Counted from the stretch's first letter, positions 2,840-57,828 are shown. The stretch: DNA of 64,000 nt from Macrostomum lignano (GCA_002269645.1 NIVC01000604.1:1-64000), one strand, 5' to 3'. Notes: generated from the sequence alone by a model not told the origin. A program made the numbers and translations.

Positions 2840-8009
<5,170 letters not shown>

Positions 8010-9179
8010 CTTCCTCAGCTGTTGAGTGCAGTAATTAGAAAACCGAGGGCCCTGAGCCAGGGGATGCAAAAATTGCTTTGTTTTTGTAAACACGGGCAGG
8101 GATGGGCAGGCGGCCTCTGATTGGTCAGTGAGAGGGCTCAGAGCTTCCCCTCTCACTCGGCGGCTGCCTTCGGAACATTCGCGTCCGGAATAAAAAATTG
8201 GCTTTAGAAAAAAGTTAATCGAATTTAACGACTTTATCTGTATGCCCCCCTCCCCCTGTATTGACCTCCCTTATCTTCCTTCACTTCTCCTTACTCTCCA
8301 GTACTTTCTTCATCCACTTGCCATGTCACATGTCAGCCCAGTCGCTGAGTATTTGTCTGCAAGCATTCCGACTTCGCTGTAGAGATAGACTAAAGGCGGG
8401 TAGGGAGAGAGGAGACACAAGGCCTGTCAGAGTCAGGAAGCTCAGCAAGGGGCGCCGCCTTTATTCAGCCAAGGGGTCTCCTGCCCGCCTGCCTGCAGTC
8501 GGCGGACAATAAGACTGGCTAAATAATTAAGCTGGCGCTCCCCACTTGCCCAGCCTTCGGGTGGAAACCGGCTGAGAAGCAGGTCCAGCCTGCTGCGTGT
8601 GAGTGCAGATGGACAGCAGCATTGTTTTGGTCTCCAACGGAAACCATAAAACTTGCGGCACCACTAATCAGATGATGAATTGCTATTTCTCAATTAGCGT
8701 TGTTTTATCTTGGCAACATTGAAACCTGCGGCATTTCCTATGTTCCGTAAACTAAAGTCCGGCTGAACTACTAAGGTAGATGATACCTGCAGAACCGGAG
8801 TCTTCTGCGGGCTAATCAAAGGTGCGCGGCACACTGCCATCCCAGCAGACCCCCAGGTATACAGCCTTACACTTTTAACCTGTAGAGCAGACAGTAAGCA
8901 GCAAGTGAGTCCAAAGCCTAAAGTACAATTGTCGGGTTTCAGAAGCAATTTTCTGCCCAACCTCTCCTGTCCATCTCTTTTGCAAGAGGAAGCGGCTCAT
9001 TTTTTTAACAAAAAAAGTTGAGCGCCCTCAGCCGGCGGCAACCCTGGACCAGAAGTTTAAAATTGAGCAAAGACGACGGATCAATTTCCAATCTTCAGTG
9101 CCCTCCAAACGACCCTGGATTCCACTGGCCAGTTAAAACTCACACTTCACCACCTCAATCTTTATCGGTCGATCTCCTC

Positions 9180-10110
9180 TCCTTATCAACCAGCCATCTC
9201 ATTTCTTATCAACCATTCTACCCTCATTATCAACCAGCCATCTCATTTCTTATCAACCATTCTACCCTCATTATCAACCAGCCATCTCATTTCTTATCAA
9301 CCATTCTACCCTCATTATCAACCATTCTACCCTCCTTATCAACCAGCCATCTCATTTCTTATCATCAACCATTCTACCCTCCTTATCAACCATTCTACCC
9401 TCATTATTAACCAGCCATCTAATTTCTTATCAACCATTCTACCCTCATTATCAACCAGCCATCTCATTTCTTATCATCAACCATTCTACCCTCATTATTA
9501 ACCCGCCATCTAATTTCTTATCAACCATTCTACCCTCCTTATCAACCATTCTACCCTCCTTATCAACCATTCTACCCTCCTTATCAACCATTCTACCCTC
9601 CTTATCAACCATTCTACCCTCATTATTAACCAGCCATCTAATTTCTTATCAACCATTCAACCTCCTTATCAACCATTCTACCCTCCTTATCAACCAGCCA
9701 TCTCATTTCTTATCATCAACCATTCTACCCTTCTTATCAACCAGCCATCTCATTTCTTATCATCAACCATTCTACCCTCCTTATCAACCATTCTACCCTC
9801 CTTATCAACCATTCTACCCTCATTATTAACCAGCCATCTAATTTCTTATCAACCATTCTACCCTCCTTATCAACCATTCTACCCTCCTTATCAACCATTC
9901 TACCCTCCTTATCAACCATTCTACCCTCCTTATCAACCATTCTACCCTCCTTATTAACCATTCTACCCTCATTATCAACCATTCTACCCTCATTATCAAC
10001 CATTCTACCCTCATTATCAACCATTCTACCCTCATTATCAACCATTCTATCCTCCTTATCAACCATTCTACCCACATTATCAACCATTCTACCCTAATTA
10101 TCAACCAGTC
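9180..10110. repeat. Minisatellite, 21 bp unit ATCAACCATTCTACCCTCCTT with interspersed variant units
   Basis: Tandem copies are directly visible. Confidence 0.95.
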
Positions 10111-16546: not shown

Positions 16547-18163
16547 TCAAGTCAGCGAGTGAAGATTTTTATTTGGATGCTGCTGGGGCCTCTGCTGGCC
16601 AGTGAAGTTGCCGATCGGCATTCTGGGAAACTGCTGGGGCTGCTGCATCTGCGGCTGCATCTGGCCAGCCGCGGTGGACATTGGCATCGGCATGGACATT
16701 GGCGGAGGCAGGGGCAGATGATGATTGGCCTGGACAGATTGGCCAATAGGCATGGGCATCGATGCGTGATTGGTTGACAGCTGGTGCTGGTGCTGAAGAT
16801 GGTTCGGCTGCATCTGGCCCTGGCCGAGGTGATGCGGCGGCGGTGGCGGGGGCGGCGGCGGCGGAGGCACAAACCCGCCGCCCAGATGCGATGGCGGAGG
16901 CGGCGGCGGCGGCGGAGGCGGCAAAGGAAGCGAAGTGGGAATGGTTGACATGCCCTGCTGTTGCTGTTGATACTCGAATGCCATGAGCGGCGGAGGAGGC
17001 GGCGGTGGCGGGGGAGGCGGCGGAGCGGCATTAGTGACGGACGCGTACTGGTGCCAGCTGCCAGTGAGCACAGAGTTCGGCATCTGCATAGAGACGTGAG
17101 ACACCGAGCCTGGCAGGGTGTGAAGCTGCTGATGGTGCTGGAAGTGCACCTGATTCACCACCGCTTGGGCGGCGGCGGCGGCAGCGGACAGCGAGGTTGA
17201 AGCGGAGACTGTGGTCGCTGCAGGGATTGATGCGGTTTGTGCAGGTGCAGGCGCAGGAACCTGCTGCGGTGCGGCCTGCTTGGCGGCCTGGTCGGAGGAG
17301 GGCTTGGCCCGGCTGTCCTGATCAGCTCCTCCGCCGCTCCTGCCATTGCCAATACTATTGCTATTATTATTGTTACTGTTGCTATTGGCAACGGCGGCTG
17401 GCACGCTGCCGGCGCTGTTATTGCTCTGGTACATGTCCAGGATGCGATGGCAGATGCGCTCGATGAGGGGAAAGCCGAGCCCGGGCACGAACTGCTCCCA
17501 CCACTTGTCGTTGGGACCGGAGCGGCCCTCCCAATCCCGAATAGGGAAGCTGCTGCACAGACTGCCGAGGTACAGCACGGAGCAGGCGATGATCTCGGGC
17601 TCCCACTGCAGGCACAGGGTTGTGTACAGGCTGTCATTAACGAATGCCCAGGCGTGGCGAACAATGGTGCTGATTTCATCCTGGGAGCCGCGCAGCCTCC
17701 GGCCCATCTCCAGCAGGTGTTTGTACGGGTGCTCAACTATGAAATCGAATTTCAGAGTTCGAAGCATAAGCCGCTCAGTTTGCATGACCAGCTCGGCAGG
17801 GCTGCGGCCCTGAGTCTGGGAAGCAAAATGAGCAGCAAATGTCCGCTCGTCCAGGTGCTTCTGAACCGAGCGGACCAGATCGCGGCACAGTTTGGGCGTC
17901 TCTTCAACTTTGCCGGCCAGGAACAGGGCGCAGGCGGCAACCACGTAGCGGTCGTATTTCTTGAAGCTGTGCGCCATGTAGAAGCGGTGAAAGAACACGA
18001 TGCCGGTGGCTATGGTGTTGTACGTGAGCCCCAGGTCTTGGCCGCATTGCAGGATAAACTTGGCGCCTTCGCAACGGTATTTCGACTCAGTCTGTCGCTC
18101 CACGCCGTCCCGATAAGAGGGCGTGTTGAGCAACTCCTCCGCCTCCCAGTACCAGCAGGGCAT
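16547..18163 (-). CDS. CCNK: Cyclin K, intronless, 538 aa, with Pro/Gln-rich C-terminus
   Basis: N-terminus MPCWYW...TPS; cyclin box ATGIVFFHRFYMAHSF and LFLAGKVEETPK; VEHPYKHL; AWAFVNDSLYTTLCLQWEP; poly-Pro tail. Confidence 0.96.
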   Translation of the reverse strand: MPCWYWEAEELLNTPSYRDGVERQTESKYRCEGAKFILQCGQDLGLTYNTIATGIVFFHRFYMAHSFKKYDRYVVAACALFLAGKVEETPKLCRDLVRSVQKHLDERTFAAHFASQTQGRSPAELVMQTERLMLRTLKFDFIVEHPYKHLLEMGRRLRGSQDEISTIVRHAWAFVNDSLYTTLCLQWEPEIIACSVLYLGSLCSSFPIRDWEGRSGPNDKWWEQFVPGLGFPLIERICHRILDMYQSNNSAGSVPAAVANSNSNNNNSNSIGNGRSGGGADQDSRAKPSSDQAAKQAAPQQVPAPAPAQTASIPAATTVSASTSLSAAAAAAQAVVNQVHFQHHQQLHTLPGSVSHVSMQMPNSVLTGSWHQYASVTNAAPPPPPPPPPPPPLMAFEYQQQQQGMSTIPTSLPLPPPPPPPPPPSHLGGGFVPPPPPPPPPPPHHLGQGQMQPNHLQHQHQLSTNHASMPMPIGQSVQANHHLPLPPPMSMPMPMSTAAGQMQPQMQQPQQFPRMPIGNFTGQQRPQQHPNKNLHSLT

Positions 18164-22604: not shown

Positions 22605-25600
22605 AAACATAAAACATGTCGAACATAAAAGAGCCACCATGTCGAACAGTAAAGAGCCACCATTTAAAACATAAAAGAGCCACCATGTCAAACATAAAAG
22701 AGCCACCATGTCAAACATTAAAGCGCCACCATGTCAAACATTAAAGAGCCACCATGTCAAACATAGAAGAGACACTGTTTCAAACGTGTACGTGACTCCA
22801 TGTCAAACATAACAGAGCCACCATGGCGAACATTAAAGAGCCACCATGTCAAATATAAAAGAGCCACCATGTCAAACAGTAAAGAGCCACCATGTCAAAC
22901 ATAAAAGAGCCACCATGTCGAACATAAAAGAGCCACCATGTCGAACAGTAAAGAGCCACCATTTCGAACAAAAAAGAGCCACCATGTCAAACATAAAAGA
23001 GCCACCATGTCAAACATAGAAGAGACACTGTGTCAAACGTGTACGTGACTCCATGTCAAACATAACAGAGCCACCATGGCGAACATTAAAGAGCCACCAT
23101 TTCAAACATAAAAGAGCCACCTTGTCAAACATTAAAGAGCCATCATGTCAAACATAAAAGAGCCATCATGTGAAACATATACGTGACTCAATGTCAAACA
23201 CAAAAGAGCCACCATGTCAAACATAAAAAAGCCCCCATTTCAAACATTGAAAAGCCACCATTTCGAACATTAGAGAGCCACCATGTCAAAAATTAAAGAG
23301 CCACTTTGTCGAACATTAAAGAGCCACCATTTCGAACATTAAAGAGCCACCATTTCGAACATAAAAGAGCCACCATGTCGAACATAAATGAGCTACCATG
23401 TCGAACATAAAAGAGCCACCATGTCAAACAATAAAGAGCCACCATGTCAAACATTAAAGAGCCACCATGTCAAACATTAAAGAGCCACCATGTCTAACAT
23501 AAAAGAGCCACCATGTAAAACATAAAAGAGCCACCATGTAAAACATTTAAGAGCCAACATGTAAAACATTTAAGAGCCACCATGTCAAACATATAGGTCA
23601 CTTTATGTCAAACATATAAGTGACTTTATGTCAAACATATAAGTCACTTTATGTCAAACATTAAAGAGCCACCATGTCAAACATTAAGAGCCACCATGTC
23701 AAACATAAAAGAGCCCCCATTTCAAACATTGAAAAGCCACCATTTCGAACATTAGAGAGCTACCATGTCAAACATAAAATAGCCACCATGTCAAACATTA
23801 AAGAGCCACCATGTCAAACATTAAAGTGCGACCATGTCAAACCTAAAATAGCCACCATGTCTAACATAAAAGAGCCACCATGTAAAACATAAAAGAGCCA
23901 CCATGTAAAACATTTAAGAGCCAACATGTAAAACATTTAAGAGCCACCATGTCAAACATATAGGTCACTTTATGTCAAACATTAAAGAGCCACCATGTCA
24001 AACATTAAAGAGCCACCATGTCAAACATTAAAGAGCCACCATGTCAAACATTAAAGAGCCACCATGTCAAACATTAAAGAGCCACCATGTCAAACATAAA
24101 AAAACCACCATTTCGAACATTAAAGAGCCACCATTTCGAACATAAAAGAGCCACCATGTCGAACATAAATGAGCTACCATGTCGAACATAAAAGAGCCAC
24201 CATGTCAAACAATAAAGAGCCACCATGTCAAACATTAAAGAGCCACCATGTCAAACATTAAAGAGCCACCATGTCTAACATAAAAGAGCCACCATGTAAA
24301 ACATAAAAGAGCCACCATGTAAAACATTTAAGAGCCACCATGTCAAACATATAGGTCACTTTATGTCAAACATATAAGTGACTTTATGTCAAACATATAA
24401 GTCACTTTATGTCAAACATTAAAGAGCCACCATGTAAAACATTAAGAGCCACCATGTCAAACATAAAAAAGCCCCCATTTCAAACATTGAAAAGCCACCA
24501 TTTCGAACATTAGAGAGCCACCATGTCAAACATTAAAGAGCCACCATGTCAAAAATTAAAGAGCCACTTTGTCGAACATTAAAGAGCCACCATTTCGAAC
24601 ATTAAAGAGCCACCATTTCGAACATAGAAGAGCCACCATGTCAAACATAAATGAGCTACCATGTCGAACATAAAATAGCCACCATGTCAAACATTAAAGA
24701 GCCACCATGTCAAACATTAAAGTGCGACCATGTCAAACCTAAAAAAGCCACCATGTCTAACATAAAAGAGCCACCATGTAAAACATAAAAGAGCCACCAT
24801 GTAAAACATTTAAGAGCCAACATGTAAAACATTTAAGAGCCACCATGTCAAACATATAGGTCACTTTATGTCAAACATATAAGTGACTTTATGTCAAACA
24901 TATAAGTCACTTTATGTCAAACATTAAAGAGCCACCATGTCAAACATTAAAGAGCCACCATGTCAAACATTAAAGAGCCACCATGTCAAACATAAAAAAA
25001 CCACCATTTCGAACATTAAAGAGCCACCATGTCAAACATTTAAGAGCCACTTTGTCGAACATTAAAGAGCCGCCATTTCGAACATAAAAGAGCCACCATG
25101 TCGAACATAAAAGAGCCACCATTTTGAACATTGCCATTTCGAACATAAAAGAGCCACCATGTGAAACATAAAAGAGCCATCATGTCAAACATTAAAGAGC
25201 CACTTTGTCTAACAATAAAGAGCCACCATATTGAACATTGAAAAGCCACCATGTCGAACATAAAGAGCCACCATGTCAAACATTAAAGAGTCACCATGTC
25301 AAACATAAAAGAGCCACCATGTCAAACATTAAAGAGCCACCATGTCTAACATAAAAGAGCCACCATGTAAAACATAAAAGAGCCACCATGTAAAACATTT
25401 AAGAGCCAACATGTAAAACATTTAAGAGCCACCATGTCAAACATATAAGTCACTTTATGTCAAACATTAAAGAGCCACCATGTCAAACATTAAGAGCCAC
25501 CATGTCAAACATAAAAGAGCCCCCATTTCAAACATTGAAAAGCCACCATTTCGAACATTAGAGAGCTACCATGTCAAACATAAAATAGCCACCATGTCAA

Positions 25601-27770
25601 ACATTAAAGAGCCACCATGTCAAACATTAAAGTGCGACCATGTCAAACCTAAAATAGCCACCATGTCTAACATAAAAGAGCCACCATGTAAAACATAAAA
25701 GAGCCACCATGTAAAACATTTAAGAGCCAACATGTAAAACATTTAAGAGCCACCATGTCAAACATATAGGTCACTTTATGTCAAACATTAAAGAGCCACC
25801 ATGTCAAACATTAAAGAGCCACCATGTCAAACATTAAAGAGCCACCATGTCAAACATTAAAGAGCCACCATGTCAAACATTAAAGAGCCACCATGTCAAA
25901 CATAAAAAAACCACCATTTCGAACATTAAAGAGCCACCATTTCGAACATAAAAGAGCCACCATGTCGAACATAAATGAGCTACCATGTCGAACATAAAAG
26001 AGCCACCATGTCAAACAATAAAGAGCCACCATGTCAAACATTAAAGAGCCACCATGTCAAACATTAAAGAGCCACCATGTCTAACATAAAAGAGCCACCA
26101 TGTAAAACATAAAAGAGCCACCATGTAAAACATTTAAGAGCCACCATGTCAAACATATAGGTCACTTTATGTCAAACATATAAGTGACTTTATGTCAAAC
26201 ATATAAGTCACTTTATGTCAAACATTAAAGAGCCACCATGTAAAACATTAAGAGCCACCATGTCAAACATAAAAAAGCCCCCATTTCAAACATTGAAAAG
26301 CCACCATTTCGAACATTAGAGAGCCACCATGTCAAACATTAAAGAGCCACCATGTCAAAAATTAAAGAGCCACTTTGTCGAACATTAAAGAGCCACCATT
26401 TCGAACATTAAAGAGCCACCATTTCGAACATAGAAGAGCCACCATGTCAAACATAAATGAGCTACCATGTCGAACATAAAATAGCCACCATGTCAAACAT
26501 TAAAGAGCCACCATGTCAAACATTAAAGTGCGACCATGTCAAACCTAAAAAAGCCACCATGTCTAACATAAAAGAGCCACCATGTAAAACATAAAAGAGC
26601 CACCATGTAAAACATTTAAGAGCCAACATGTAAAACATTTAAGAGCCACCATGTCAAACATATAGGTCACTTTATGTCAAACATATAAGTGACTTTATGT
26701 CAAACATATAAGTCACTTTATGTCAAACATTAAAGAGCCACCATGTCAAACATTAAAGAGCCACCATGTCAAACATTAAAGAGCCACCATGTCAAACATA
26801 AAAAAACCACCATTTCGAACATTAAAGAGCCACCATGTCAAACATTTAAGAGCCACTTTGTCGAACATTAAAGAGCCGCCATTTCGAACATAAAAGAGCC
26901 ACCATGTCGAACATAAAAGAGCCACCATTTTGAACATTGCCATTTCGAACATAAAAGAGCCACCATGTGAAACATAAAAGAGCCATCATGTCAAACATTA
27001 AAGAGCCACTTTGTCTAACAATAAAGAGCCACCATATTGAACATTGAAAAGCCACCATGTCGAACATAAAGAGCCACCATGTCAAACATTAAAGAGTCAC
27101 CATGTCAAACATAAAAGAGCCACCATGTCAAACATTAAAGAGCCACCATGTCGAGCATAAAAGAGCCACCATGTTGAACATTGAAGAGCCACCATGTCAA
27201 ACATTCACGATCAGCCATGTCGAACATAAAAGAACCACCATGTAAAATATAAAAGAGCTACCATGTCAAACATAAAAGAGCCATCATGTCAAACATAAAA
27301 GAGCCATCATGTGAAACATATACGTGACTCAATGTCAAACATAAAAGAGCCACCATGTCAAACATATATGACTCCATGTCAAACATATATGACTCCATGT
27401 CAAACATATATGACTCCATGTCAAACATTAAACATAAAAAAGACACCATGTCACACATAAGGGAGCCACCATTTCAAACATAAAAGAGCTACCATGTCAA
27501 AACATTATTGAGCCATTATGCCCAATATAAAAAGACACAATTTCAAACGTAAAAGGGCCGCCATGGCAAACATAGAAGAGCCACCATGTCAAACATTAAA
27601 GAGCTACCATGCCAAACATAGAAGAGCCACAATGTTAAACATTAAAGAGCTATCATGTCAAACACAAAAGAGCTACCATGTCAAACATAGAAGAGCTACC
27701 ATGTCAAACATTAAAGAGCCACTTTTTTTAAACAAAAAAGAGACACCATTTCAAACATAAAAGAAGTGTC
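22605..27770. repeat. Satellite array, 23 bp unit GCCACCATGTCAAACATTAAAGA, with a 1806-bp higher-order duplication
   Basis: Monomer period of 23 bp is visible. Identical spurious ORFs recur at +1806 (23674/25480; 25040/26846). Confidence 0.97.
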
Positions 27771-30213: not shown

Positions 30214-30500
30214 CATACATGCGCAACAGTCGGCCGAGTCGGCCGATCCGGCCGACCGATTTTGCGGCCAAACATGGAAGTCGCAAAAATGCCCACCTGA
30301 AAAACACCAAGTAGTAGTACTAAGTAGCTGACGAGACATTTTGGCTTTATAAGACAGTCATAGTTACTCCTGCCGTTTACCCAAAGTTGCGTTAATTGCG
30401 TTTTTTACATGTAAGTCACATTTTTGGCCAACAACTACGTCGCATTATTGTTAAAACTAAGTCGCACGGCCGACCGAATTTTGGAGGTCGCGCATGTATG
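30214..30500 (-). mobile_element. hAT MITE (287 bp) of the same family as the 5.9 kb element
   Basis: TIRs CATACATGCGC / GCGCATGTATG; perfect 8-bp TSD AAGAGCAT. It is an inverted full-length homolog of 31798-32083. Confidence 0.93.
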
Positions 30501-32527
30501 AAGAGCATCAAGGTTTGTGTCTTAGGCTTATTCTTTTCTAGCCTATTGTTTTCTTTTTTCATTTTTTCCTATCTATTTTCCTCTTTTCTCCTTTATCTCC
30601 TCTATTTTCTATCTTTTTTTCTTTTTTCTCTTTATTCAGCAGTAATAATTTGACAGTCTATAGAAAATAGCTATATTTTACTCAGGCTAGGCTTAGGCTT
30701 TATACTGTTCTATGTTTAATAATCTAAGATAGAACTGATAAAATGTAACAATGGCATAATATCAATAAAAAATAGTGTGACATTCAATAATCAGCTTTCT
30801 AGGTTCTAGCAATTAAAATAGTTATCAGAAAATTTGTGCATTGCTATAGAAAAAATATTGTTGACACTAATAGATAATAGTCTATTATAATATAAGCTCT
30901 TAAAACTGATGTCATATAAAAATTATGACCAATATATCATATCCTAAACCTGTAGGGAATTTACATTTATTCCCTAGGATCCCCAAGAAGTTTTTTCTAG
31001 ATAATTATATTCCCTATTATAGTAGTTTTTTCTGGTATGGGAAAACTTTTTTAGACTTATATACTTATATAAGAGTATACTTATAGACTTATTTATACTT
31101 ACATTATATATTATATATAATGCATATAATAATTATACATGGCTCCTAATTGGTATAAATATAATTTGACTAAATATATTGTTATATATTTATAACTCCA
31201 CTTCTATATTATAATGCAAAAGTTATAGTATACAAGTAGGGGTCCCAAATCCCAGATATTTTACAATCCTGGGCAAATTATGGGATTGAACAAACAAATA
31301 TATGGGAAGCTTTCCATTGTCTACAAAACAATTTCTCAAAATCAATTTGAGCATCATTTGGGTTTGTACTTTCTTAGCTTAAACTGCATTGATAAAATAG
31401 TTGAAGTTATTTCATTTTATTTCATTTAACTTTGAATTTGAAATGTATATGCTGCACTAGTGCTTTTCTGCCCCTAACACAGACCATCTCACATACACAC
31501 AGAAGCTCAGAGTTAGAACCCAATCCCCACCCCACCCCCGTTTTCTGCCCCTTTCCTTTCTTTAGCTGTGCCTGTGCCATGCAGTAGGGCCTAGGCCAGT
31601 ATGCCCAGTGTCTAGGCCATTGCCACTTAGACAGTTAGACTAGAGGACTAGACCATTTGTCTAGTGACTAATAGTGTTTGATACAGTTGATTGATAGTCT
31701 CATTGTTTTTTATTCTATAACTTCATTCCTAGGTTGCAAAAATTATCTCAAAACTATTAAGTGCTAACTGCAAGACAAAAATATTTACATTTGCAAACAT
31801 ACATGCGCAACCTCCAAAATTTGGTCGGCCGTGCGACTTAGTTTTAACAAAAATGCGACGTAGTTTTCGGCCAAAAATGCGACTTACATGAAAAAACCTG
31901 AAAGCAAAATTAATGCAACTTTGGGTAAACGGCAGGAGTAACTATGACTGTCTTTATTAAGGCAAAATGCTTCGTCAGCTACTTAATACTACTTTGGTAT
32001 TTATTTGGGTGGGCATTTTTGCAACTTACCTTGGTTGGCCGCCAAATCAGTCGTCCATATCGGCCAACTATTGTGCATGTATGGTTTTGACTCTTGTCAT
32101 TCCTTATCGTATTTGTACCCCATGTGGCACTAGAACAGTACACTTGACACGGAGTGTTTTAGGCATGATTGTACAGTGTAAGGTTGCAAAAGTGGGGAGT
32201 GGCAGAGATACATATGTATATATAGCTGTATGAGTATGATGGCACAAGCTAAGGCTAAGTCAATGCATGCAGCGATAAAAGCAGTCTGTAAAGCCAAATA
32301 GTGAAAGTTAACCTTAACTTATAGCACCTTGGCAGCCTATGCTGTCTGCCTGCATCTGATACGAGCATATAACTAAACTACCAAGGCAATTGGTTGTATT
32401 TACACTTACTTTCTGTACATGAATTGGTAAAGGTAAGGGCTTTTAAATGTTTTATTTATATAGTAATACTCATAAATCAATTTTATTTTATCACCAAAAT
32501 CATATACTCGACTTAATCTTTCACAGA

Positions 32528-34113
32528 ATGATGTACAGCCTTAGTTGTCTTTGCCTACTGATTCTAAGTGGCATCCTAGCTATCAATGGTATTCTAGCTG
32601 AGAGTGAGTGCTCAATTGTTATAAATGAGTTAAATACTGATGAGCCTAATATTGGATCTCAAGAATTTTCAGAGTTCATTGAGCTAAAGAAAGTTTGTTC
32701 TACAACTGCAATGCTATTAGGATCAGTGCCAGTGAGACTCCATGATTTTCTTCTGATTGGAGTTCAAGAATATAGCGGCGATTTTAGACGACCTGTGGTT
32801 TCATTTTCTGCTGACTTCTATCGGTCCTCGGGCTTCAAAACGGACAGCAGTTTCTTTGTTATTGCATCAAAAGGGAAGCAGGAAGCAGCAGATATGTTTT
32901 TTACCGATACATCTATTGGGTATCAGGGAAAAACTAGACATGGGCTGCCAAGTTCCGCTCCTAGTAGATCATCGCAGTCATCCATCATTGATTTTTTCAA
33001 GTCTGCTAGTAAGACAATTCCAACAGAACCAAATGCATTAAAGAATGGGAATGGTAAAAGTGCTATGGCCATTATTCTCTTGTATCAACGAGACTTCTAG
33101 ATCAGAATCGGACAGTTCAAGTTCCACAACTGCCAGTAGCATTGGAAAACTGCGACTAGCTAAAATGCATGCAACACAAAGAAGACCTGTTTATGAAGAT
33201 AAAATTATCATTGATAACTCATTAGCTGAAATTATTAGGAACAATAACAGGTGCACATTTTTGAGTCCATTTATCGTAGGCTAAGAGACAAGCCCAACTA
33301 CATCTTAAAGCCAGCAAGAGAATGGGATGAACTTGGTCATGAGGACTATTCAATAAACCGGTGCCCTGAATCCAGCAGTGAGTTACGAAAGCCTTTGCTT
33401 TTTACAAGGTGGAAACTTGGACAGTTGACTCCAGGTAGATAAAATGATTGCTCAGGTGCTCATTGGATTTTAGAGGACAATATTGAAGCCATCATAAATA
33501 CACCTTCAAGAGAAGCATGTACATTGGCAGACTCAGCATTAGCATCTGCTTCATCAGCAACAGAAAGAATCGAAATGCGACTAGCTCCTGCTCCAGCTCC
33601 ATGTTCTGAAAGCTCACACCGTAGTGAATTGGCCAGGTCCTATGAATTTTCAGAGCAAATAGCAGCTAATCGAGATCATGCTGTTCAAACTGCTGCTGCA
33701 GAAACTTCTAATTTTTGCTCTGCTGCAAATGTACAGGAAAGAAGAGAGTTGTTGGAGAATGACCAGCAAACAAGCAAACTACAAGTGGAAATTATTAGGC
33801 AAGTAAATATTCAAAGACAATCAACGAAACGATCACTTTGCCAAAGTCCTATTGTTGATTTAGATTCGAGCGACTCAAGGGGTTCAGGTGATGTTGAAAT
33901 AGTACAAGTAAATACTGCAGAAGCAGGGCCATCGCAAAGAAAAATACCATGCATAAGCACATCTGCAGACGCATGTCTAGCCACTTCAGCATCAAAGCCC
34001 TCGTCTTCCTCTATGATGGGCGAAAATATTGAAGTTTTCCCTAAAAAGGACTGGGAGGATACATCTGGTTTTCGAGAGGAGTGGTTACATTCTTTGGAGA
34101 TGCACCAGTCACA
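32528..34113 (+). pseudogene. Signal peptide + lamin-tail-domain (LTD)-like module + Ser/Ala/Glu-rich linker, carried inside the hAT element; two apparent frameshifts and one in-frame stop
   Basis: MMYSLSCLCLLILSGILAINGILA-ESECSIVINELNTDEP...EFIELK; AIILLY; DYSINRCP; TPGR*NDCSG. A 3' splice site precedes the ATG (intron 32432-32526 plausible). Confidence 0.65.
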
Positions 34114-34244
34114 GTAAGTAAATGGAAACTGACGAACTGTAAATTAATGTATAGTGTATTGTGTATTGCACTTATTAGCATATTGCTTTTAGATACTCAC
34201 AAATAGTCCAAATCCCAAAATATTCTCTAATTTGACCATTGCAG

Positions 34245-36632
34245 ATCATTTTCAAGAAAATTTGTGTCACAAGAAATGAAGACATGGTTTCAATATGTTC
34301 AAAACACCGAAGATCTATCAAGATCTGGAATACAATGTCGGATCTGCAGAAAATTTTTGAATGCACATAAGAAAAAGGAGACAAATCTAGAGAGCCAACG
34401 TAAGTTAACTTTTGCAACAGAACAAGGCTACATTCCCAAAGGTCATGCAAAAGATAGCGTACGAAGAAAACTACAGGAACATTCATCAAATACACTTCAC
34501 AGTGACGCCATAAAGTGGATGAAGGAAAAACATACTTCAGTTCTTGCAAAGCAACTCAAACAGATGAATGAGGCCGCTAGACTAGCTAAAACTAAACGAG
34601 ATGAAATAACAGCCCGAGTTTTGACAACAGTTTTTTCGCCGAAGTCAAATCTAATATTCCATTCAGTGCTCATCCAAATATGATTGATTTACAAGTAAAA
34701 AATGGGTTGGATATGGGGAGCCATCATAAGCATCGCAAAAGTGCCGCAGCAATGGTGGAATCAATCAGTAATACAATGCATCGGACATTTGTGAATTACA
34801 TTAAAAGTGCTGACAACCTTCCGATTTCTATTGTACTAGATACAACGTCTGATATTCATTCAAACAGCTACGTCATGATATACTTCAGAGTTCTTGAAAA
34901 CAGCCAACCTTTGATGTTTTTTTATCGGTTTAAACGTCTGACTGAAGTAGAGACTGGACGAAGCATTTATGAACTTCTCATCCGTTTATTTTCGGATGAC
35001 AAGCTAGAAGATGAAATCAAACGAAGGCTATGGGGGGTGACAACTGATGGTGCATCCGTAATGACAGGAAGTCGAGTGGGATTAATAAGTCAACTGAGGC
35101 CTTGGGCTAGCAAACAATTTTTTCAGCACCATTGTGCAGCGCATAAGTTAGAACTTTCAATCTATCATGCCTTTGAAATCTTCCCATTTATGCAACATCT
35201 CGATAAGAATATAAATTCTCTACACAAATTTTATATGAGCCACGCTGTTAAACGTAAGGCATCTTTGGCACAAACTTCGGAAGCACTCAACTTGGTTTTC
35301 TATGAATTAAAAAGAATATATCGTATCAGGTGGGTTGCATCGGAAGTGTCTGCTCTTGATGTGATTCGAAAGTCATACTACTTGCTTCTGACAAATTTAG
35401 AAAATATCAAATCACCTTCCTCAGGCTTTGATGACGAAAGTAAAGCAACTGCCTCTGGATTATTGAAAACATTGCAAAATGTCCGGTATTATTCATTACA
35501 TCTATTTCTCATGGACATTCTAAAATTACTGGAATTTGAGTCCTTGCAGTTTCAAAGAGCCAAGGGTACATTTATTGGCTTGCAAGAACGCCACACTAAC
35601 CTTATCCATTCACTAGAAACCTTAAAAACGAACAATGGTCCTCGCATTGTGGACTTTTTGGCTTCCTGCAAGTGTCGTCGAGTTTTGGGAACTGCAGATG
35701 GATATCCGCAGCTGGAATACCATTCAGGATGTCACACAAGAGACCTATCTTATTCTAACTTTGCTTGTCCTTCCGGCCCTGGAAGCAGCGATCCAACAGA
35801 GAGGTTTGAGTTGAAGCAACCAGGTTCTGCTGCAGACAGATCTCTAAGAAATAGATTATTTGATGCTAGTGGACGTGGCAGTGTTGTTGACATGGGAGCT
35901 TATCCAGCACTGGATGAGATTCGCAGTCGAATCATTGATAGCATAATTGATCAGCTGCGTAATTATTTTCCTGAGGATGACTACTCAATATTTAATGTGC
36001 TCAACCCAGTGTTATTGCCTAATGCTGAAACATTACATACTGTCTTTACATACAGTTCGAGAATCATACCTCTTGCTAGACGGTTTGGAATGGAAGATGA
36101 CAGCTCTGAATCTGAAACAGAGGACCATCTTTCTGATTCAGACTCTAGAGATGCAGATGCTTCAGAACGCGCTACAGAAAGGACAATCTCTGGTCAGTTC
36201 GGTCTACTCCTAAAAAGTTTGATCACTTCGCATAGTGTTGACTTCTGTGCCTACAAAGGCAAAGGTCCGGTGAAATTTTGGAGTCACTTTCTAGAGACAA
36301 GAACTGTTGAATGGCTGCCCAGAATAAAGAATCTAATTATGGTTGTGTTAACTTTGCCAATATCATCAGCTGAGGCTAAAAGAGGGTTTTCTATCTATAA
36401 GCACATTGCCTATGACAGGAGAACACGCTTGGCACCAAAAACATTGGAGCATCTACTACGGATTCGAATAAATGGGCCTCCGCTGATGAAATTTAAGCCG
36501 GATATTTATGTCAATGATTGGCTGAAAAAACACTGGCGTTCTGATGCTCCTGGAGGTCAACGGCAAAAAGAATCCAACGTAGACGAGGAAAATAAAGATT
36601 CTGATTCTGATTTGCTAAGTGGACTATTTTAA
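34245..36632 (+). pseudogene. hAT transposase (TTF-type zinc finger + DDE + C-terminal dimerisation region), inactivated
   Basis: W..Y...CRIC...EH...H zinc finger; IPFSAHPNM..LQ..NG; VLDTTSD; TTDGASVM; HHCAAH; RIRW; LPISSAEAKRGFS (catalytic E replaced by K). There is a frameshift in the T6 run at 34631-34636. Confidence 0.9.
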
Positions 36633-36974
36633 AAGTTTTTTATCAGTTTTAATCTGCTACAATTTTAATCAATTATTACAATGGTACATGCATAATCATT
36701 AAGACTACAGTTCTTCTAAGTTCATATATAAGACCGTTAGAATCTTGCAGTTTTAATTTGCTAATTAAATATTATTAAAAGTATGATTTGCAATTGTAAT
36801 AGGGCTGAAAAATTACTGCTTATAAGTTATTCTATCCCTATTTCTATTCCTTAGCCATTTCTGGCTTCGTAATTCTTAATTTTTCAAATTGATGCGTTAA
36901 TGCACACGTAGCCTACACCCTAGTAAGTGATACATTAAATTCATCCTAAACTAATCCTAACCTAATAATCCTAA

Positions 36975-37495
36975 AGATGCTCTGCGACTTAACTCAGTCC
37001 TGCTGCGACTTACCTCGGCCCTGCTGCGACTTACTCGGTCCTGCTGCGACTTAGCTCGCCCTCGGTGCGACTTAGCTCTCGCTCGGTGCGACTTAGCTCG
37101 CCCTCGGTGCGACTTAGCTTGGTCCTGCTGCGACTTAGTGCGACTTAGCTCTCGCTCGGTGCGACTTAGTTCGCCCTCGGTGCGACTTAGCTCGGTCCTG
37201 CTGCGACTTAGCTCGCCGTCGGTGCGACTTAGCTCGGTCCTGCTGCGACTTAGCTCGCCCTCGGTGCGACTTAGCTCGGTCCTGCTGCGACTTAGTGCGA
37301 CTTAGCTCTCGCTCGGTGCGACTTATTTTGCCCTCGGTGCGACTTAGCTCGCCCTTAGTGCGACTTAGCTCTCGCTCGGTGCGACTTAGTTCGCCCTCGA
37401 TGCGACTTAGCTCGGTCCTGCTGCGACTTAGCTTGCCCTCGGTGCGACTTAGCTCGCCCTCGGTGCGACTTACCTTGTCTTCAGTGCTGCAACTT
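36975..37495. repeat. Subterminal tandem array of the hAT element, ~21 bp unit TGCGACTTAGCTCGCCCTCGG
   Basis: Tandem copies are visible; the core GCGACTTA also recurs in both element termini. Confidence 0.92.
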
Positions 37496-38201
37496 ACAGC
37501 ACTTACAACTCTTTTTGTGTTTTTCTCTTTCTCTTTGCTCCCTTTTTCTCGTTTTTTCCTTTTCCTTTCCCCTTTTTCGTCTTTTGTTTTTTCGTTTTTT
37601 TTGGCGGTTAATCAATTTTGCGACTTACTTGGTTGGCCGCCAAATCGGTCGGCCGGATCGGCCGACTCGGCCGACTGTTGCGCATGTATGTTTGCAAAGT
37701 ACAAATTCTAATCCCATGTTTATCCAGATCCTAGACCCCTAATCCTGTGATACTAAACACTAACACACTAGCAAAAAGCCAGGATCCTGGGACTAGGACC
37801 CCTATTCACAAGTGCAAAAGCTAAAACTGCAATTGGTAAGTTTAAGTTTATAGTATAGTCTAAATTATAATTTAAACCCAAAAGTTAATATATTATATTT
37901 ACTCAAATATTTAACTAGTAACTATATTTATAATCTATATATCAGTGCTCTTTTTTAAGTTTAACTTATCATTTATTTTTTGTTATATCCATAAATATAT
38001 ATGCTTATACAATATAGTAATGACAATGTAAAATTTGGTGCAAATATATAATATTAATATCTTCACCAGGCTGTGATTCCCATTTGGAACATCTGAAGCC
38101 ATCTTCGCAGTATGCTCCAAGAATGCCATCTTCATCAGGCCGTGATCAACTGAGGCTATCTTCTTAGTCTGGTCATCCTAGGGCTGAATTTTTGCTTTCA
38201 G

Positions 38202-40140: not shown

Positions 40141-40478
40141 CATACATGCCCAACCTTAAAATTTTACCTATCTAGTGCGACTTAGTTTTGTCCAGATTTG
40201 CAACTTAGTTGCTCCTAATTGCAACTTAGTTCCTCTCAATTGCTACTTAATTTTTACTTTATATGACTTTTTTGCTTTTTTCTTATCTTTTTTCTCTCTC
40301 TTCTTTTTCTTTTTCTTTCTTTTTTCCCTCCTTTTTTTACTTTTCTTTTTCTCTTCATCTCTTCTTTTTTCCCCGTAATTTTTCATTATTTGCTTTTTTT
40401 AATTTTGCAATTTACCTTGGCTGGCAGCCATTTCACCCATCCAGTTCAGACATGTTGGATAGGTGTTGGGCATATATA
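40141..40478. mobile_element. Degenerate MITE related to the CATACATG-TIR family
   Basis: Starts CATACATGCCCAACC...GTGCGACTTAG and ends GTTGGGCATATATA; TSD not clean. Confidence 0.65.
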
Positions 40479-42554
40479 TATATATCATTATAAATAAAAG
40501 TTTTTTTATCTACCATGGCAGTTTTTTGCTAAAAATTGATATTCTCTTTTTTAATTTTGTTATTCTCATAAATTTCATTAATACTTTTTTATTTTAGTTT
40601 TTAATTCTTTTTTAAAGAGCTTTTACTAGTTGAAATTTAACTACACAATTATATTAGCCCTGACATGGCTATTTTTTGTTAGCCCTGACATTCCAACTGT
40701 GTATACTTTATGTTGAACCTAAAAATTTTATATGCCAAGTGTATGCCAAGATTTTTAATGAAAAACAAAAATATAATAGAATTTTCTAGCATAAAGGCAA
40801 CCTTCTAGACTATGGGTGAAAGCAAATCATAGATCTGAGCTTAGTCTTATCTTTGATTATTACACTTGGTAGAATTCTTTACTAAGTATGGTGGATTGCT
40901 TCTTATTGCTTTTGAAGCCCATATAGCAAGCACTCTTGCAACTTTATCTTGAATTCCTATTGGATCACCAAGACATTGCAAGCTTGAATGAAATCAACAA
41001 GGCTTTTAAACCTATAGAGCTATTGTGAAGACATTATGCTAGCATGATTATATAATTTTCACTGCAATTCATGCAGTAGAGTTTGCCATATTGAAGATGT
41101 CAAGCCAAGAAAGTGACCTTGCATGGGATCTTTCCAGTTCACTTAAGCAGCATATTTAAGAATGCAGCAGACCCATAGTGACTGCAGCCAAGTTTCTCTT
41201 CTAATATAGAGCTACTAACTCAAAATATAAGCTCAATGCCATTAAATAAACTTTAATTTCTTTTACCAAGAAACTAGAACTATGTGCATATGCACAGCCT
41301 AAAGACAATGTCAATCAAACTGCTAATGAAAGTGGAGCAGCTGCAATAAGTCTTAACATGAATCTGGAATTGTCAATTTATGTTTAGATGAGTTGGCAAT
41401 ATCATCTTTACTAGCACAAGTAACTGTGTGTTCAAGACTAACTAAAGCAATTAACAGCAATTAGGTAAATCAGCAAGAGGTCTACATAGGCATAAAAGAC
41501 TAGCTGAAGTTATTTTTATAATAGAAGAATAAATAGTCTTAAAGTCAAAACCAAAGCATGATATTAGAAAGTCTAATTGCCTTGGCTATAAGACAGAGTT
41601 CCTCTGTATTGCACAGCAAAAAGGCACTTTGCTTATGCAACTATACCAAGGACTTCAGCTAATTCTATCTACAAGTGTCAAGGCTAAATATGCATTTTAA
41701 ACAAGTGGATCTTTTGTATTTAAAGTGCAATCTCAATCCTAAAGCTATATGTTCATTTGTTTTTTGTTTTATAAAATTGATGCACAAACTGGTTCTTAAA
41801 TTTCTTGATAAATACTGTTTTTAAAAATAGTTAACTAGTTCTTAAATACAAGGGGCACTACAAAAGTTTTTAGCTAGACCTCAGCTATTTGTCCTATCAG
41901 ATTAATTTTTTGCAGGCTTACAGGACAATATATATGACCATGATAAATAAAATTTCATGCAAATATCTTGTAGCATTTAGCCACTAGAGCCAGATAACTT
42001 TAGCACCTCTGCCCAATTTCCAGCAGAGCTCATGGAACTGAATTGCCAACACTTTCATGCCATGATCTTCTATGATTATTGCAGTGGCCTTAATTGCCAC
42101 CAGTGCCACAAAAGGCTGTCAGCAGCTTTCCCAGAAGCTGCTCCATCACTTGTGACCGTCAGCAGGTTTTGCAAGTTTTGTTGTGGCCAAGACTTGTTGG
42201 AAGATGAGGAGCATACAGGCCAACCTTCAACCGCCACAACACTAGAAACAGTGGCTCATGTCTGCCAGCTGGTAGAACCTGACTGGCAGATAACCTACAA
42301 GGAGATTGAGGTATCCCTGGGTATCCATTCGTTGGCCATTGCCAAAATCCTCCACAACCACATTGGCTTACGCAAGCTGACTAGTCATTGGGTGCCCCAC
42401 CTGCTGAAGCTTGAGCAGAAGCAGGCCAGGGTCAACTGGTGCTACCAGATGCTGCAGAAGTACAGCGATGGAGCATCTAAGGTGGTCGCCGACATCGTAA
42501 CATGCGACGAGACTTGGGTTTACTGCTACAAGCCAAAGTGCAAGTGCTAGTTGC

Positions 42555-54581: not shown

Positions 54582-57500
54582 TCAAGCATGCAGACTGTCT
54601 GAGTAGTTGACCAGGCAGGCATCTCCACAGCTGCCGTTCACCCAATCCCGCACCTTCAGCATGGCGATGCACTGCTCCACGTGTGGCCTCTCCTGTAGTT
54701 ACCAAGACAATGTGGGATTGAGCTATGTTTCCTTTGCATGAGTTGTCCATGAGTAGAGAGTAAAAAATGCAGTCAAACATCACTTAGAAAAGAAGAGATA
54801 AGAGCCAATCAGAAAGCAGTGAGGAGAGAGGCAAGAGAGCAGAAGCATGAGCACACAGGCGTAGGAAACGCACCACCCCCGCCTCACTCACCAGCACTGC
54901 GTGGTGCGTCATCTGCCGGATGAGAAAATCCACGCTCTTGTTGCCGTCCAGCAGAGCCGGCGCGAACTCCGGCGAGCCAGCAGGCGCGGAGGTGCCGTAG
55001 TAGCACTCCCACAGCATCACGCCCAGGGCGAACACGTCCGACTTGATGGAGTACTGCGGCCCGGGCGGCACCAGCTCGGGCGCCAGGTAGCCCTTCGTGC
55101 CTGCGAAGCTCGCCCCGGACATGGCCTCTTCGTTCTTGGCGAAGCCGAAGTCGCAGATGCGCAGCCGGGCGTCGCCTGGCGCACCCGTAGCCTCGCCGAT
55201 GTCGACGAGCACGTTCTCCAGCTTGAGGTCGCGGTGCAGGATGCGCAGCCGGTGCAAGTGCCGGACGCCAGCGAGAACCTGCTGGTAGAGGCCGAGACAG
55301 ACGGGCAAGACGGCGTCCGGGTCGTCCGCAACCGCGGGCACCAGCTGCTTCCGGTGCTGCTTCAACAGTTGACGAAGGTTGCCCTTGCACAGGGGCATCA
55401 TGAGGCCGATGCGGTTCAGCCTGGGAAAGTACAGGCAGCCCAGGCCGGGCAGCAGGTTCGGGTGCGGGTCATCGGCCAGCTCGCGGAGCATCTCTGCCTC
55501 GAGCAGCGCCGAGCTTGCCATGTTCGACCGGATCAGCTTCAGTGCCAGAGGCGGCTGCTGCTGGGGCAGGGCGAACACTTCCGAGAAGTATGTGCTGCCG
55601 ATTCGTTCGCCAATGAGCATCGCGTCCTCGACTTCCGTGTTGATGCCGAGGCGTCTGCAGCTCTCCGGTGGCAGCATTCCGTCACCCAGCTGCACCGCTC
55701 CGTAGAGCTTGGCATCGGCGATGAGGTTCTGCAGGCGGACGTAGATATTTTCGAGCTCCCCCAGCTGCCTTGAAGGGTCAAGCTGGTGCTGCGGCGTAGT
55801 CTGCTGCGGAGCCTTCTCCGGCAGAATGCAGTACCGGTCCACGAACTTGCTCATCTTGTCAACGTCCTGCTGTAGGAAGCGTCGCGTGGGCACAAATAAG
55901 TTTTTGTTGATGAAGCCTTTGGAGAGTTTGTCCAAGTAGTCCCAGGCATCGTCGCGCAGCTTCTCGGGTGACTCGTGCGCGCTCCTTCGCTTTGGTGCCC
56001 GTCGTTTCGACGGCTGCCGGCGGATCGCGGACACCGGCCAGATGATGGCCATTGTGATGGCAGCCAGCGGGACGAACAGCGGCATGCCGATGCCCACCGC
56101 CAAGCTCTGCGTCACACTGGACCGCATCGGCTGCCAGCCCAGCTGCCGGATGCCCACGCTGATGACCGTCTGGCTGCTCAAACTCCCCTCAAAATCCTCG
56201 TCACCGCCGACCATCTCGAAGGCGGCACGGGAAGTTGAAGCCGAGGACGACTGCGTCGGAGACGGGGGTGGCGGCGCGCAAAACGAGTCGGAGGGGCCGC
56301 AGAAAAGCAGCTCAGGGATGCACTGCGCCTGCTGCCGCAGGGCCCGAAGGTGCTGAACTCGTGACTCGGCGATGCAGCGGTCCAGCTCACTCAGAATCCG
56401 GGTGTGCCGGTTCCAGCCGTGCAGTTCCGCTGATACCATTTCCATGAGGGACCGCTGTAGCTGCTCCTTGCTCAGCTGCGGGTGCCGCAGGCTGTGCGCA
56501 ACATAGGCCGAAGCGAGACGGTCTTTGACCTGCTGCTGGCGCAGGTGGGCCTGGATCTGCTCTGACAGATTGCCAAGGCGGCTTTCAAACGAGCGCTGAA
56601 AGCTGCTCGCCGCTTTGCCTGCCGACTCCTGCAGCCGCTGCAAGTCGCCGAAGAAGCTGCGCTGCGGCCGGCGCTGCTCCTGGCCGGAGAAGTCATTCGA
56701 GCGCCGCTTGACGAGGATTCCCCGCGTCACTGCGTTGAGCGCGGTGAGGCTTTTCACCAGCTGCCGCAGGCTGTCTCGCTGCAGCTGGCTCAGCTGCTCG
56801 CTCAACAGGCCGTCCAACTGCCAATCGCCATCGACTAAAAGGCGACGCCGTCGTTCCTCAGAGTCTTTCACAAAGTCGCGCAGAGCCGCGTCAACCAGGC
56901 CGCGGCTCGTCTCGATGAAGTCCAGACAGACCGTGGCGTCGATGGCGAACCGCAGCTGGCTCTGCTTCAGCGCGACCGTCGCCTGGGTGTCATCCAAGTG
57001 CAGCAGTACGCCGTGCTCAACGGCCTCCCCAATCTCGCTCTCCGCCTCGCCGGCGTCTTCGTCAGCGGACAGGCGCTGCAGGAAGATCGCGCAGCTCGGC
57101 ATGAATCGGCGCAGTCGGCGGCGCGTGCACGGCGTCAGAAGCGGTGCCAGCACCAGCCGCAGGCTGTCTAAGCCGGGGCAGTTCGCCCGCAGCTCCCAGT
57201 CGTCAAAGACGTCGTCAAATTCGACGCAGTCTCCGGTATCCGATTCGTCTTCATCGCTGCTGGCAGTCTGGGCCTCGGCCAGCCACTGCAGGGCGGCCAC
57301 CCAGTCGATGAAGCTTCGCTGCTGCAGGTCGCCCGCATCACCTGGCCGCTGCCGGTGAAGTCGACGGAGTTTCACCACGGCGACGCGGCCGTCGTCAGGC
57401 AAAGCGGGGTCGTGCACCAGCCACAGCAGGCCGCCGTTCGCTGGCACTCGCCGGCTGCGCAGCGCCTCCAGCGATTCGCCAATCTCACCAGAGAAGCAAG

Positions 57501-57750
57501 CGGCCAGGTCGACGACCGCCCCTCGGCCGCTGAATAAGAGGCCCGGCCGGCGGTTCGCCAGCTCGGCTGAGGCCGCTTGCGAGGCCTCCGCCGACTGGGC
57601 CGCCTGCCGGCAGAGGCCGCGCTCCAGCAGCAGGCAGCCTTTGAGGCCTCTTTGGATCTCGCCGATGGCGCCGTTGCAGTAGGCGGTGAGGCGCGACTGG
57701 GACTGGGCGAACTGGCCCAGGCAGCGCTGGACGGACTCGCTCAGCCGCAT
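54582..57750 (-). CDS. Large protein kinase with long helical N-terminal region and an internal hydrophobic hairpin (DSTYK/Dusty-like architecture); exons 57750-54892 and 54692-54582, ~989 aa
   Basis: LALK, LHRDLKLEN, ICDFG, GTKGYLAPE and SDVFALG motifs. The CTG|gtgagt donor splices in frame to ERPHVEQC (subdomain XI). An acceptor lies at 57767, 16 nt before the ATG; upstream coding exons are possible. Confidence 0.88.
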
Positions 57751-57828
57751 GTCGGGATTGAATTGGCTGCGGGGGATGGGGAAAATTGTGCAGAACTTCA
57801 ATTGCTAGTTTTATCCTTGCCGGTACTG

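Follow-up and report, generated by a model that had tools for sequence, protein, structure and literature searches.

A hAT transposon of Macrostomum lignano with an LTD-like domain and a signal-peptide-like leader in frame with its transposase represents a clade of such fusions

DNA transposases are nuclear enzymes. Some of them possess captured N-terminal accessory domains, as exemplified by the THAP-hAT (THAP12/P52rIPK) and BED-hAT transposases, and others, such as those of the P element and Ac-type elements, are accompanied by alternative products in which intron retention gives rise to a repressor. Here we describe an element located at positions 31798-37690 of a 64,000-nucleotide stretch of the Macrostomum lignano genome (GCA_002269645.1, NIVC01000604.1:1-64000), which we refer to in its entirety as the window. 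This element is a recently decayed, formerly autonomous hAT transposon whose gene begins with a signal-peptide-like leader and a module of ~300 amino acids (aa) resembling a lamin-tail domain (LTD), and continues in frame into the transposase. Sequence comparisons indicate that the fusion marks a whole clade of hAT transposases and not the window copy alone. We are highly confident of the identity, architecture, conservation and selection of the element, and consider the explanation as a whole, namely a hAT fusion clade equipped with a secretory-type N-terminus, to be moderately probable.

The gene comprises two exons that encode, in order, the leader, the module, a linker and, beyond an intron at 34114-34244, the transposase; translation of open reading frames (ORFs) on the minus strand of the element revealed nothing gene-like. 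In the window copy the module reads ESECSIVINELNTDEP...EFSEFIELK ... SINRCP ... TPGR*NDCSGAHWILE, the low-complexity linker terminates in KDWEDTSGFREEWLHSLEMHQS, and exon 2 opens with SFSRKFVSQEMKTWFQYVQN...CRIC... and runs to a stop codon at 36630-36632. A preliminary description of this locus, made from its sequence, had proposed a hAT element with perfect terminal inverted repeats (TIRs) and a target-site duplication (TSD) enclosing a spliced gene with a leader, module motifs and a phase-correct 131-nt intron, and our analysis confirms both the coordinates of the element and, by translation, the structure of the gene. An 8-bp TSD, short TIRs with subterminal repeats, a C-terminal dimerisation domain and the existence of multiple copies and miniature inverted-repeat transposable elements (MITEs) together identify it as a hAT. 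The predicted parts of exon 2 are a CxxC...H...H region (~34336-34500), an RNase-H-like core and the hAT dimerisation domain (~36315-36464), the last of which is the sole Pfam domain of the gene (Dimer_Tnp_hAT, PF05699; 27 bits against a cut-off of 21.4, E 4e-6) and scores 32.4 bits in the intact M. lignano protein P0194 described below. The core is predicted from PF27073 matches precomputed for P0005, P0006 and P0194, with P0005 also bearing PF05699; DUF4371 is sub-threshold in P0007 and a Pfam scan of the core region gave no match. The zinc-finger region shows a CxxC...H-x5-H pattern conserved in the family and matched no zinc-finger family in Pfam, such that the earlier assignment of a TTF zinc finger stands as regards the pattern, while no model confirmed the TTF label.

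Homologues of the module are consistently found attached to the same transposase. A query with the module matched P0001, which is 60% identical and whose exon 1, intact and 522 aa long, stops at the same intron, as well as P0002, P0004 and P0003 (42%), the last of which has no intron anywhere between the module, WEDTTHF and the zinc finger ...KTWLNYIFNAEDPSESKFQCRFC. At locus L003, module ORFs are followed by an intron at the same place and then by a PF27073 transposase ORF, and at L006, whose transposase is 34% identical to that of the window, an exon carries a leader and CSLVINEINTD...EEFIELK, and a 1009-aa ORF spans the C-terminal half of the module, the linker and the transposase to its end. 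When a profile of the module was scored against 1.84 billion cluster representatives, we obtained 236 matches at E≤1e-3, including 119 at E≤1e-10, the best 150 of the 236 being listed; many are 1000-1250 aa long, and often the whole fusion is a single intron-less ORF of this length. Every sufficiently long match also bears a window-type transposase over ~700 aa at 200-416 bits (BLASTP), whereas module-less hATs found with the transposase query score 55-111 bits, and this constant pairing of the module with the closest transposases argues that the fusion defines a clade. Module and transposase reside within one protein in at least 25 cluster representatives, and Dimer_Tnp_hAT was detected by Pfam in four long matches (P0024, P0029, P0054 and P0064).

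The M. lignano genome itself contains further copies of the element. The 90% cluster of PAA56523.1 (P0005) holds at least 18 annotated fragments from this genome. A sister copy, L011 (NIVC01000016.1), has the same TIRs, a TSD of GCAACTAG and the same gene, and is 99.4% identical to the window copy, with 27 substitutions in 4.9 kb; its lesions differ from those in the window, exon 1 being interrupted by two stops and the region close to the C-terminus by a 10-nt insertion. L005, which has the same TIR and a TSD of AATTTAAA, carries a 5' deletion and belongs to a second subfamily that is 71% identical, and L010 (NIVC01003487.1) is an apparently intact 6364-bp element of that subfamily, again with the same TIR, a TSD of TAACATCC and the GCGACTTA subterminal repeats, next to which lies a MITE with a TSD of TCCAGAAA. 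The L010 gene consists of exon 1 (4001-5628), a 104-nt GT..AG intron and exon 2 (5733-8046), and its translation is exactly the annotated 1313-aa protein PAA51197.1 (P0194), complete with leader, module, linker and transposase. Because L005, L010, L011 and two MITEs are each flanked by their own 8-bp TSD, and copies with different TSDs enclose the same gene between the same TIRs, the unit including the module must have transposed repeatedly. From this anatomy and these copies, transposition is ordinary hAT cut-and-paste, with the MITE derivatives presumably mobilised in trans. The intact GenBank protein is annotated only as hypothetical or as 'HAT C-terminal dimerisation domain-containing', and a search for TIRs around an intact 1086-aa ORF in L008, and in L006, yielded no convincing pair. 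Collectively, three further M. lignano copies, each bounded by TIRs and a TSD of its own, the relatives whose modules are 60% and 42% identical, and the cluster representatives described above establish that other family members possess the module.

Both halves of the gene appear to be under purifying selection. By the Nei-Gojobori method, comparison of the two M. lignano subfamilies gave an approximate omega (dN/dS) of 0.18 for the module, which retains 76% aa identity, and 0.145 for the transposase (73.5%), alongside 0.38 for the linker (53%), 0.31 for the leader (36%) and 0.07 for the WEDT junction, a conserved motif at the end of the linker. These values indicate that the module is constrained as the transposase is.

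The preliminary description had regarded the module as LTD-like. No match to Pfam LTD (PF00932) above threshold was obtained for the window module, P0001-P0003, P0194 or 30 family members. The profile of the module, however, matched the Branchiostoma floridae protein LOC118427361 at E 3.5e-12, and this protein comprises a signal peptide, ~9 LTD repeats with a Pfam LTD E-value of 7.5e-95 and a transmembrane segment. Using hhalign, a 73-sequence module profile matched 14 Branchiostoma LTD repeats at 99.6-99.8% (E 1e-24 to 5e-29), the alignment extending over 182 columns, covering the whole 184-aa amphioxus repeat and bringing all of the previously named motifs into register. An AlphaFold2 (AF2) model of the module is beta-rich and of good quality scores (pLDDT 82.7, pTM 0.85); in a Foldseek search of the PDB it gave weak Ig-V-like matches (E≥0.03, TM≤0.41) and no lamin entry. 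From these comparisons we assign the module to the extracellular 'INE...TPG.N.C' branch of the LTD superfamily, within which it is a divergent member enlarged by insertions. Among the best 150 of the 236 profile matches, the amphioxus multi-LTD surface-type protein was identified as the nearest non-transposon relative, and nothing points to a bacterial origin. The module was probably acquired in a single capture that took it, along with its signal peptide, from the 5' end of a gene encoding a secreted multi-LTD protein in an animal.

We judged the leaders by hydropathy heuristics, scoring as strong any 10-residue window with a mean Kyte-Doolittle value above 1.8. By this measure a strongly hydrophobic leader precedes the domain in 53 of 73 members, in keeping with the signal peptide first proposed for the window copy, and by a stricter count 37 of 65 have at least 9 consecutive uncharged, hydrophobic residues, the median distance from the end of this stretch to the INE motif being 9 residues. 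The sequence of the leader varies while its hydrophobic character is kept; some leaders are textbook-like, e.g. MTALCIFLLFVLIGSVAS|EQ and MAAFIQILALCALAVISWA|EI, and inspection by eye shows small residues at -1 and -3 in many. Within the module, C263 and C292 are conserved in 100% of members and are common to the amphioxus LTD repeats, with C226 conserved in 92% and C7 in 71%. The linker that follows is disordered and 115-226 aa long across the family, and leads into the conserved WEDT..F motif. None of the family linkers contains a transmembrane-like segment by hydropathy, which means that a cleaved signal would carry the whole protein into the lumen of the endoplasmic reticulum (ER); a stop-transfer segment leaving the transposase cytosolic was considered and rejected on the same grounds. 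Some 20-40 residues before WEDT lies a basic patch, which in P0001 (~470-476) is PKKKRV, resembling an SV40-type nuclear localisation signal (NLS), and in the window copy (33930-33950) is weakened to SQRKIP; the patch is not conserved family-wide.

The intron between linker and transposase occupies the same codon position in L001, L003 and L010, and is spliced in the annotated P0194, but it is absent from P0003 and P0007, which read through, and from the intron-less ORFs of 1000-1250 aa. In four copies (34112-34117 of the window, ~1795 of L001, ~1890 of L003 and 5626-5631 of L010) the retained phase-2 GTAAG donor brings an instant in-frame TAA, and unspliced RNA of these copies would encode the leader, LTD and linker alone; this TAA may be a trivial consequence of phase or the basis of a second product. 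At the other end of the gene, an acceptor-like tttcacag lies at 32520-32527, directly before the start codon of the window copy, and ttttgcag lies ~20 nt upstream of that of L001 (~205-212), which suggests a 5'-untranslated-region intron or a site of spliced-leader (SL) trans-splicing.

How might an N-terminus of this type serve a transposase? The gene encodes a single polypeptide of ~1320 aa with a predicted cleavable-type signal peptide, an LTD-like domain that would be of extracellular or lumenal type, the linker, WEDT..F, the zinc finger, the core and the dimerisation domain, and the transposase would bind the subterminal repeats. In the explanation that we favour, the N-terminal module would set where, or how much, transposase is available, with the nucleus being reached only by molecules that escape translocation or lack the N-terminus. 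That the leader is a functional ER signal and that the module governs localisation or dosage of the transposase is, on the sequence evidence, an evenly balanced proposition. We infer a working signal because the hydrophobic leader survives full turnover of its sequence, because C226, C263 and C292 are near-invariant and because, in the nearest relative identified outside the transposon family, a signal peptide is combined with LTD repeats and a transmembrane segment. Several points weigh against the explanation as a whole. It is paradoxical for a nuclear enzyme to carry a signal peptide; hydrophobicity is not clear in about a quarter of the leaders, although most of these have the appearance of ORF calls beginning within the domain or extending into it from farther upstream; and the conserved cysteines could bind metal instead of forming disulfides. 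Pfam LTD was found at sub-threshold level only (E 0.024 in P0048; 2 of 30 members, best E 0.016), no match at E≤0.001 was obtained when the AF2 model was searched against PDB and BFVD with Foldseek, the hidden Markov model of the module matched only FGF1 among PDB sequences, by chance (E≥0.08), and hhalign against the Ig-fold of human lamin A, the query sequence having been checked against 1IVT, gave 0.2%; similarity to the lamin tail itself is not demonstrable. The LTD-like label is upheld by the profile-profile match to Pfam-positive LTD repeats, and not by the direct Pfam, PDB-sequence and Foldseek tests. Lastly, the family is known mostly from unannotated SRA, ENA or JGI contigs, and dS between the subfamilies is near saturation (0.9-1.3), making the omega values approximate. 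A stronger version of this scheme, in which the transposase passes through the secretory pathway obligately, for example by somatic export and uptake by germ cells or neoblasts, or by retention in the ER or perinuclear lumen followed by conditional release, strikes us as very unlikely.

It is also conceivable, if doubtful, that the LTD is a nuclear one, acting as an extra DNA-, chromatin- or lamina-binding module while the leader goes unused, as a relic of capture or a structural element. The lamin Ig-fold has been reported to bind DNA and PCNA, transposases often acquire N-terminal DNA-binding domains such as THAP and BED, and some members carry NLS-like patches in the linker (PKKKRV in P0001; KKK, RKRK and KRKER in others). 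These basic patches are not family-wide, however, the module has no detectable similarity to the lamin tail, its near-invariant cysteines are shared with an extracellular-type LTD protein, and signal-peptide geometry is kept (strong hydrophobicity in 53 of 73) in a leader whose sequence is itself unconserved (36% identity between M. lignano subfamilies). Somewhat less plausible still, and in our view unlikely, is a gene with two products: a secreted or ER protein made of signal peptide, LTD and linker, and a separate transposase, which could arise by initiation at an internal start, by a choice between splicing and retention of the intron, or by SL trans-splicing onto exon 2. In the window, L001, L003 and L010 the intron falls exactly at the module/transposase junction and read-through of its GTAAG donor meets the immediate in-frame TAA, and in Macrostomum-like copies a Met (MKTW...) follows the acceptor, where the GenBank models P0006, P0188 and P0181 start. 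Yet a phase-2 GTAA donor produces the TAA automatically, the full-length model annotated as P0194 corresponds to the spliced fusion, the junction intron is missing from P0003, P0007 and the intron-less ORFs, and the MKTW Met is R, K or L in distant members, several of which lack any Met within the 60 residues preceding the zinc finger. A conserved internal start codon was accordingly rejected, there being no conserved Met before the zinc finger, and the earlier idea of a secreted cargo plus an internally initiated transposase does not hold as a feature of the family, in which the intron is restricted to flatworm-like copies and many ORFs are intron-less; a two-product scheme could have been added specifically in the flatworm lineage.

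That the module is a one-off capture or an artefact, be it a transduplicated host fragment under no selection, a nested insertion or a mis-assembly, is exceedingly improbable. The composite 5' end of the element, with its MITE-like unit at 31798-32083, and the many lesions of the window copy would fit such an origin, but independent copies with different TSDs hold the same gene between the same TIRs, L010 retains an intact 1313-aa ORF, the module persists at identities under 30% across more than 200 clusters, invariably accompanied by the same transposase clade, and its omega between the M. lignano subfamilies is 0.18. The family profile matches, the linked transposase, the TIR-bounded copies and the omega value refute it. 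Of the outcomes that the preliminary description had named as fatal to its proposal, we found neither a family devoid of the module nor an unselected fragment, and the module resembles Pfam-positive LTD repeats at the profile level, although the fold search gave no significant match.

Turning to the window copy itself, its features are collected in Table 1. Lesions were scored by alignment against the sister copy L011 as reference, and all five are private to the window copy in this comparison, two more than the three claimed previously. Five lesions mean that this copy is dead; despite them, it is young.

Table 1. Positions of the element, its gene, its lesions and associated repeats within the window
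Feature	Position	Strand	Evidence
Solo 287-bp MITE, same family, non-autonomous derivative, TSD AAGAGCAT	30214..30500	-	own TIRs and TSD
Left TSD TTTGCAAA	31790..31797	.	same 8-mer recurs at 37691-37698
Left TIR CATACATGCGCAAC	31798..31811	+	14 nt, perfect; 100% complementary to 37677-37690
MITE-like 5' unit: left end plus internal degenerate right-end copy (32020-32083)	31798..32083	+	aligns end to end with solo MITE
5' subterminal GCGAC(T/G)TA motifs, three copies	31832..31886	+	same motif at 5' end of intact L010
Start codon and signal-peptide-like leader MMYSLSCLCLLILSGILAINGILA	32528..32599	+	translation; hydropathy, family-wide position
LTD-like module with ESECSIVINELN, broken here	32600..33475	+	homologues, hhalign, AF2 model, omega
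Lesion 1: 2-nt deletion, frameshift	33095..33096	+	versus L011
Lesion 2: in-frame 39-nt deletion, removes VHYMIIYARSTQN	33243	+	versus L011
Lesion 3: 1-nt deletion in T-run	33258	+	versus L011
Lesion 4: nonsense TAA, Glu in relatives (TPGxENDC)	33440..33442	+	alignment of relatives
Weakly conserved linker, ends in conserved KDWEDTSGFREEW motif; end of exon 1	33476..34113	+	translation
Intron, 131 nt, GTAAGT...TGCAG, phase 2	34114..34244	+	joins frame 2 to frame 1 correctly
Exon 2, hAT transposase	34245..36632	+	650-aa ORF 100% identical to P0005 (PAA56523.1)
Lesion 5: 2-nt insertion (TC), frameshifts transposase	34636..34637	+	versus L011; intact reading TTVYAEVKSNIPF in P0188
3' subterminal array, ~24 tandem 21-nt units containing TGCGACTTAG	36982..37472	+	equivalent arrays in L010, L011
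Right TIR	37677..37690	-	reverse complement of left TIR
Right TSD TTTGCAAA	37691..37698	.	equals left TSD

The ends of the element are rich in repeats. Because the TSD TTTGCAAA is palindromic, a repeat finder lists TSD and TIR as a single 22-nt inverted repeat. The 14-mer of the TIR occurs 6 times in the window at up to 2 mismatches, against 0.56 expected, and two of these occurrences delimit the 287-bp solo MITE. A subterminal repeat motif, GCGACTTA, is present at both ends of the element, and by analogy with other hAT elements the subterminal motifs are likely candidate transposase-binding sites. The 10-mer TGCGACTTAG has 23 exact occurrences in the window against 0.09 expected, and the equivalent of the 3' array lies at 8210-8725 in L010. 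In L011 the 3' GCGACTTA array extends over ~1.7 kb (7700-9475), compared to 0.5 kb in the window copy, and this difference between near-identical copies indicates that array length changes rapidly.

The MITE-like 5' unit is supported also by direct repeats D6/D7 and inverted repeat I10. We considered whether its internal right-end copy is a nested MITE and rejected this possibility: it has no TSD of its own and L011 has the identical arrangement, which makes it a trait of the subfamily and not a later insertion. The solo MITE lies in the opposite orientation to the element and is a near-exact counterpart of its first 286 bp; recombination between the internal and terminal right-end copies of the element would yield such a 287-bp MITE. 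Further downstream, a MITE-like element at 40141-40474 with a variant TIR CATACATGCCCAAC, one TGCGACTTAG motif, GCAACTTAG repeats and a degenerate right end GTTGGGCATATATA probably belongs to a sister family.

The element sits within an AT-rich, repeat-filled stretch (~20-47 kb) between GC-rich regions laden with tandem repeats. This stretch includes a 5.1-kb minisatellite at 22615-27764, with ~220 copies of a 23-nt unit CATGTCAAACATTAAAGAGCCAC, and a mariner-like transposase fragment at 42032-42550, an ORF with a Mos1-type HTH_48 domain (E 1e-4). Three host-like ORFs sit in GC-rich (50-65%) stretches packed with 17-32-nt tandem arrays: a cyclin-T-like ORF on the minus strand at 16547-18163, with a cyclin N-terminal and a CycT2-like C domain, an ORF with a protein kinase domain at 54784-57801, also on the minus strand, and an ORF with a weak 7tm_1 match on the plus strand at 62113-63216.

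A full-text literature search found no description of an architecture combining a signal peptide, an LTD and a hAT transposase; while the hAT part is conventional, the fused architecture is apparently undescribed. Repbase entries for these elements may exist. The family escapes current annotation, with a module lacking a Pfam match and proteins listed as hypothetical. What emerges is a large, old clade, without precedent in the literature searched, in which a signal-peptide-like leader and an extracellular-type domain are kept by selection in frame with a transposase. If the signal is functional, transposons would possess a new layer of self-regulation or trafficking; otherwise, an LTD-like domain would have been recruited to a nuclear role independently of lamins. 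Either outcome informs how transposons acquire host modules. Passage through the secretory pathway, if true, would separate the site of expression from the site of transposition, might evade germline silencing and would make this the first DNA transposase with a functional secretion step. Since M. lignano is amenable to transgenesis and holds the intact PAA51197.1 copy (NIVC01003487.1) together with matching MITEs, the question is directly testable.

Among described systems, the transposase most resembles hATs of the DUF4371/FAM200-ZBED5 type (Tip100/Buster-like elements, with domesticated relatives annotated as ZNF862-like and C17orf113-like), which have the same 8-bp TSD, short TIRs, subterminal repeats and C-terminal dimerisation domain, with PF27073/PF14291 in relatives and a CCHH zinc-finger pattern ahead of the predicted core. 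Among named hAT proteins, the nearest share only 21-26% identity with it and lack the N-terminal module, and the clade described here adds to their plan the leader, the ~300-aa LTD-like domain, the linker and the WEDT motif before the zinc finger. As in the P element and Ac, retention of the junction intron in flatworm copies would give an N-terminal product without the catalytic part, but unlike in those elements the intron is not conserved in the family and the product would be devoid of the predicted DNA-binding zinc finger. With the extracellular LTD repeats of LOC118427361 the module shares the motifs (I/V)(I/V)INE.N.D.P, E(F/Y)IEL, F.IG, NG..A(I/V).L, (V/L)D..VY, S..RC and TPG..N.C, and in that protein a signal peptide directly precedes the first LTD, as the leader precedes the module here. 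The module differs from those repeats in being a single domain, enlarged by three insertions to ~300 aa and bearing extra conserved cysteines, and in being fused to a transposase rather than to further LTDs and a transmembrane anchor. Finally, like the THAP-hAT and BED-hAT transposases, this clade has gained an extra domain N-terminal to its hAT core, which selection has maintained; whereas the domains in those proteins are nuclear DNA-binding zinc fingers, the addition here looks secretory and comes with a signal-peptide-like leader.

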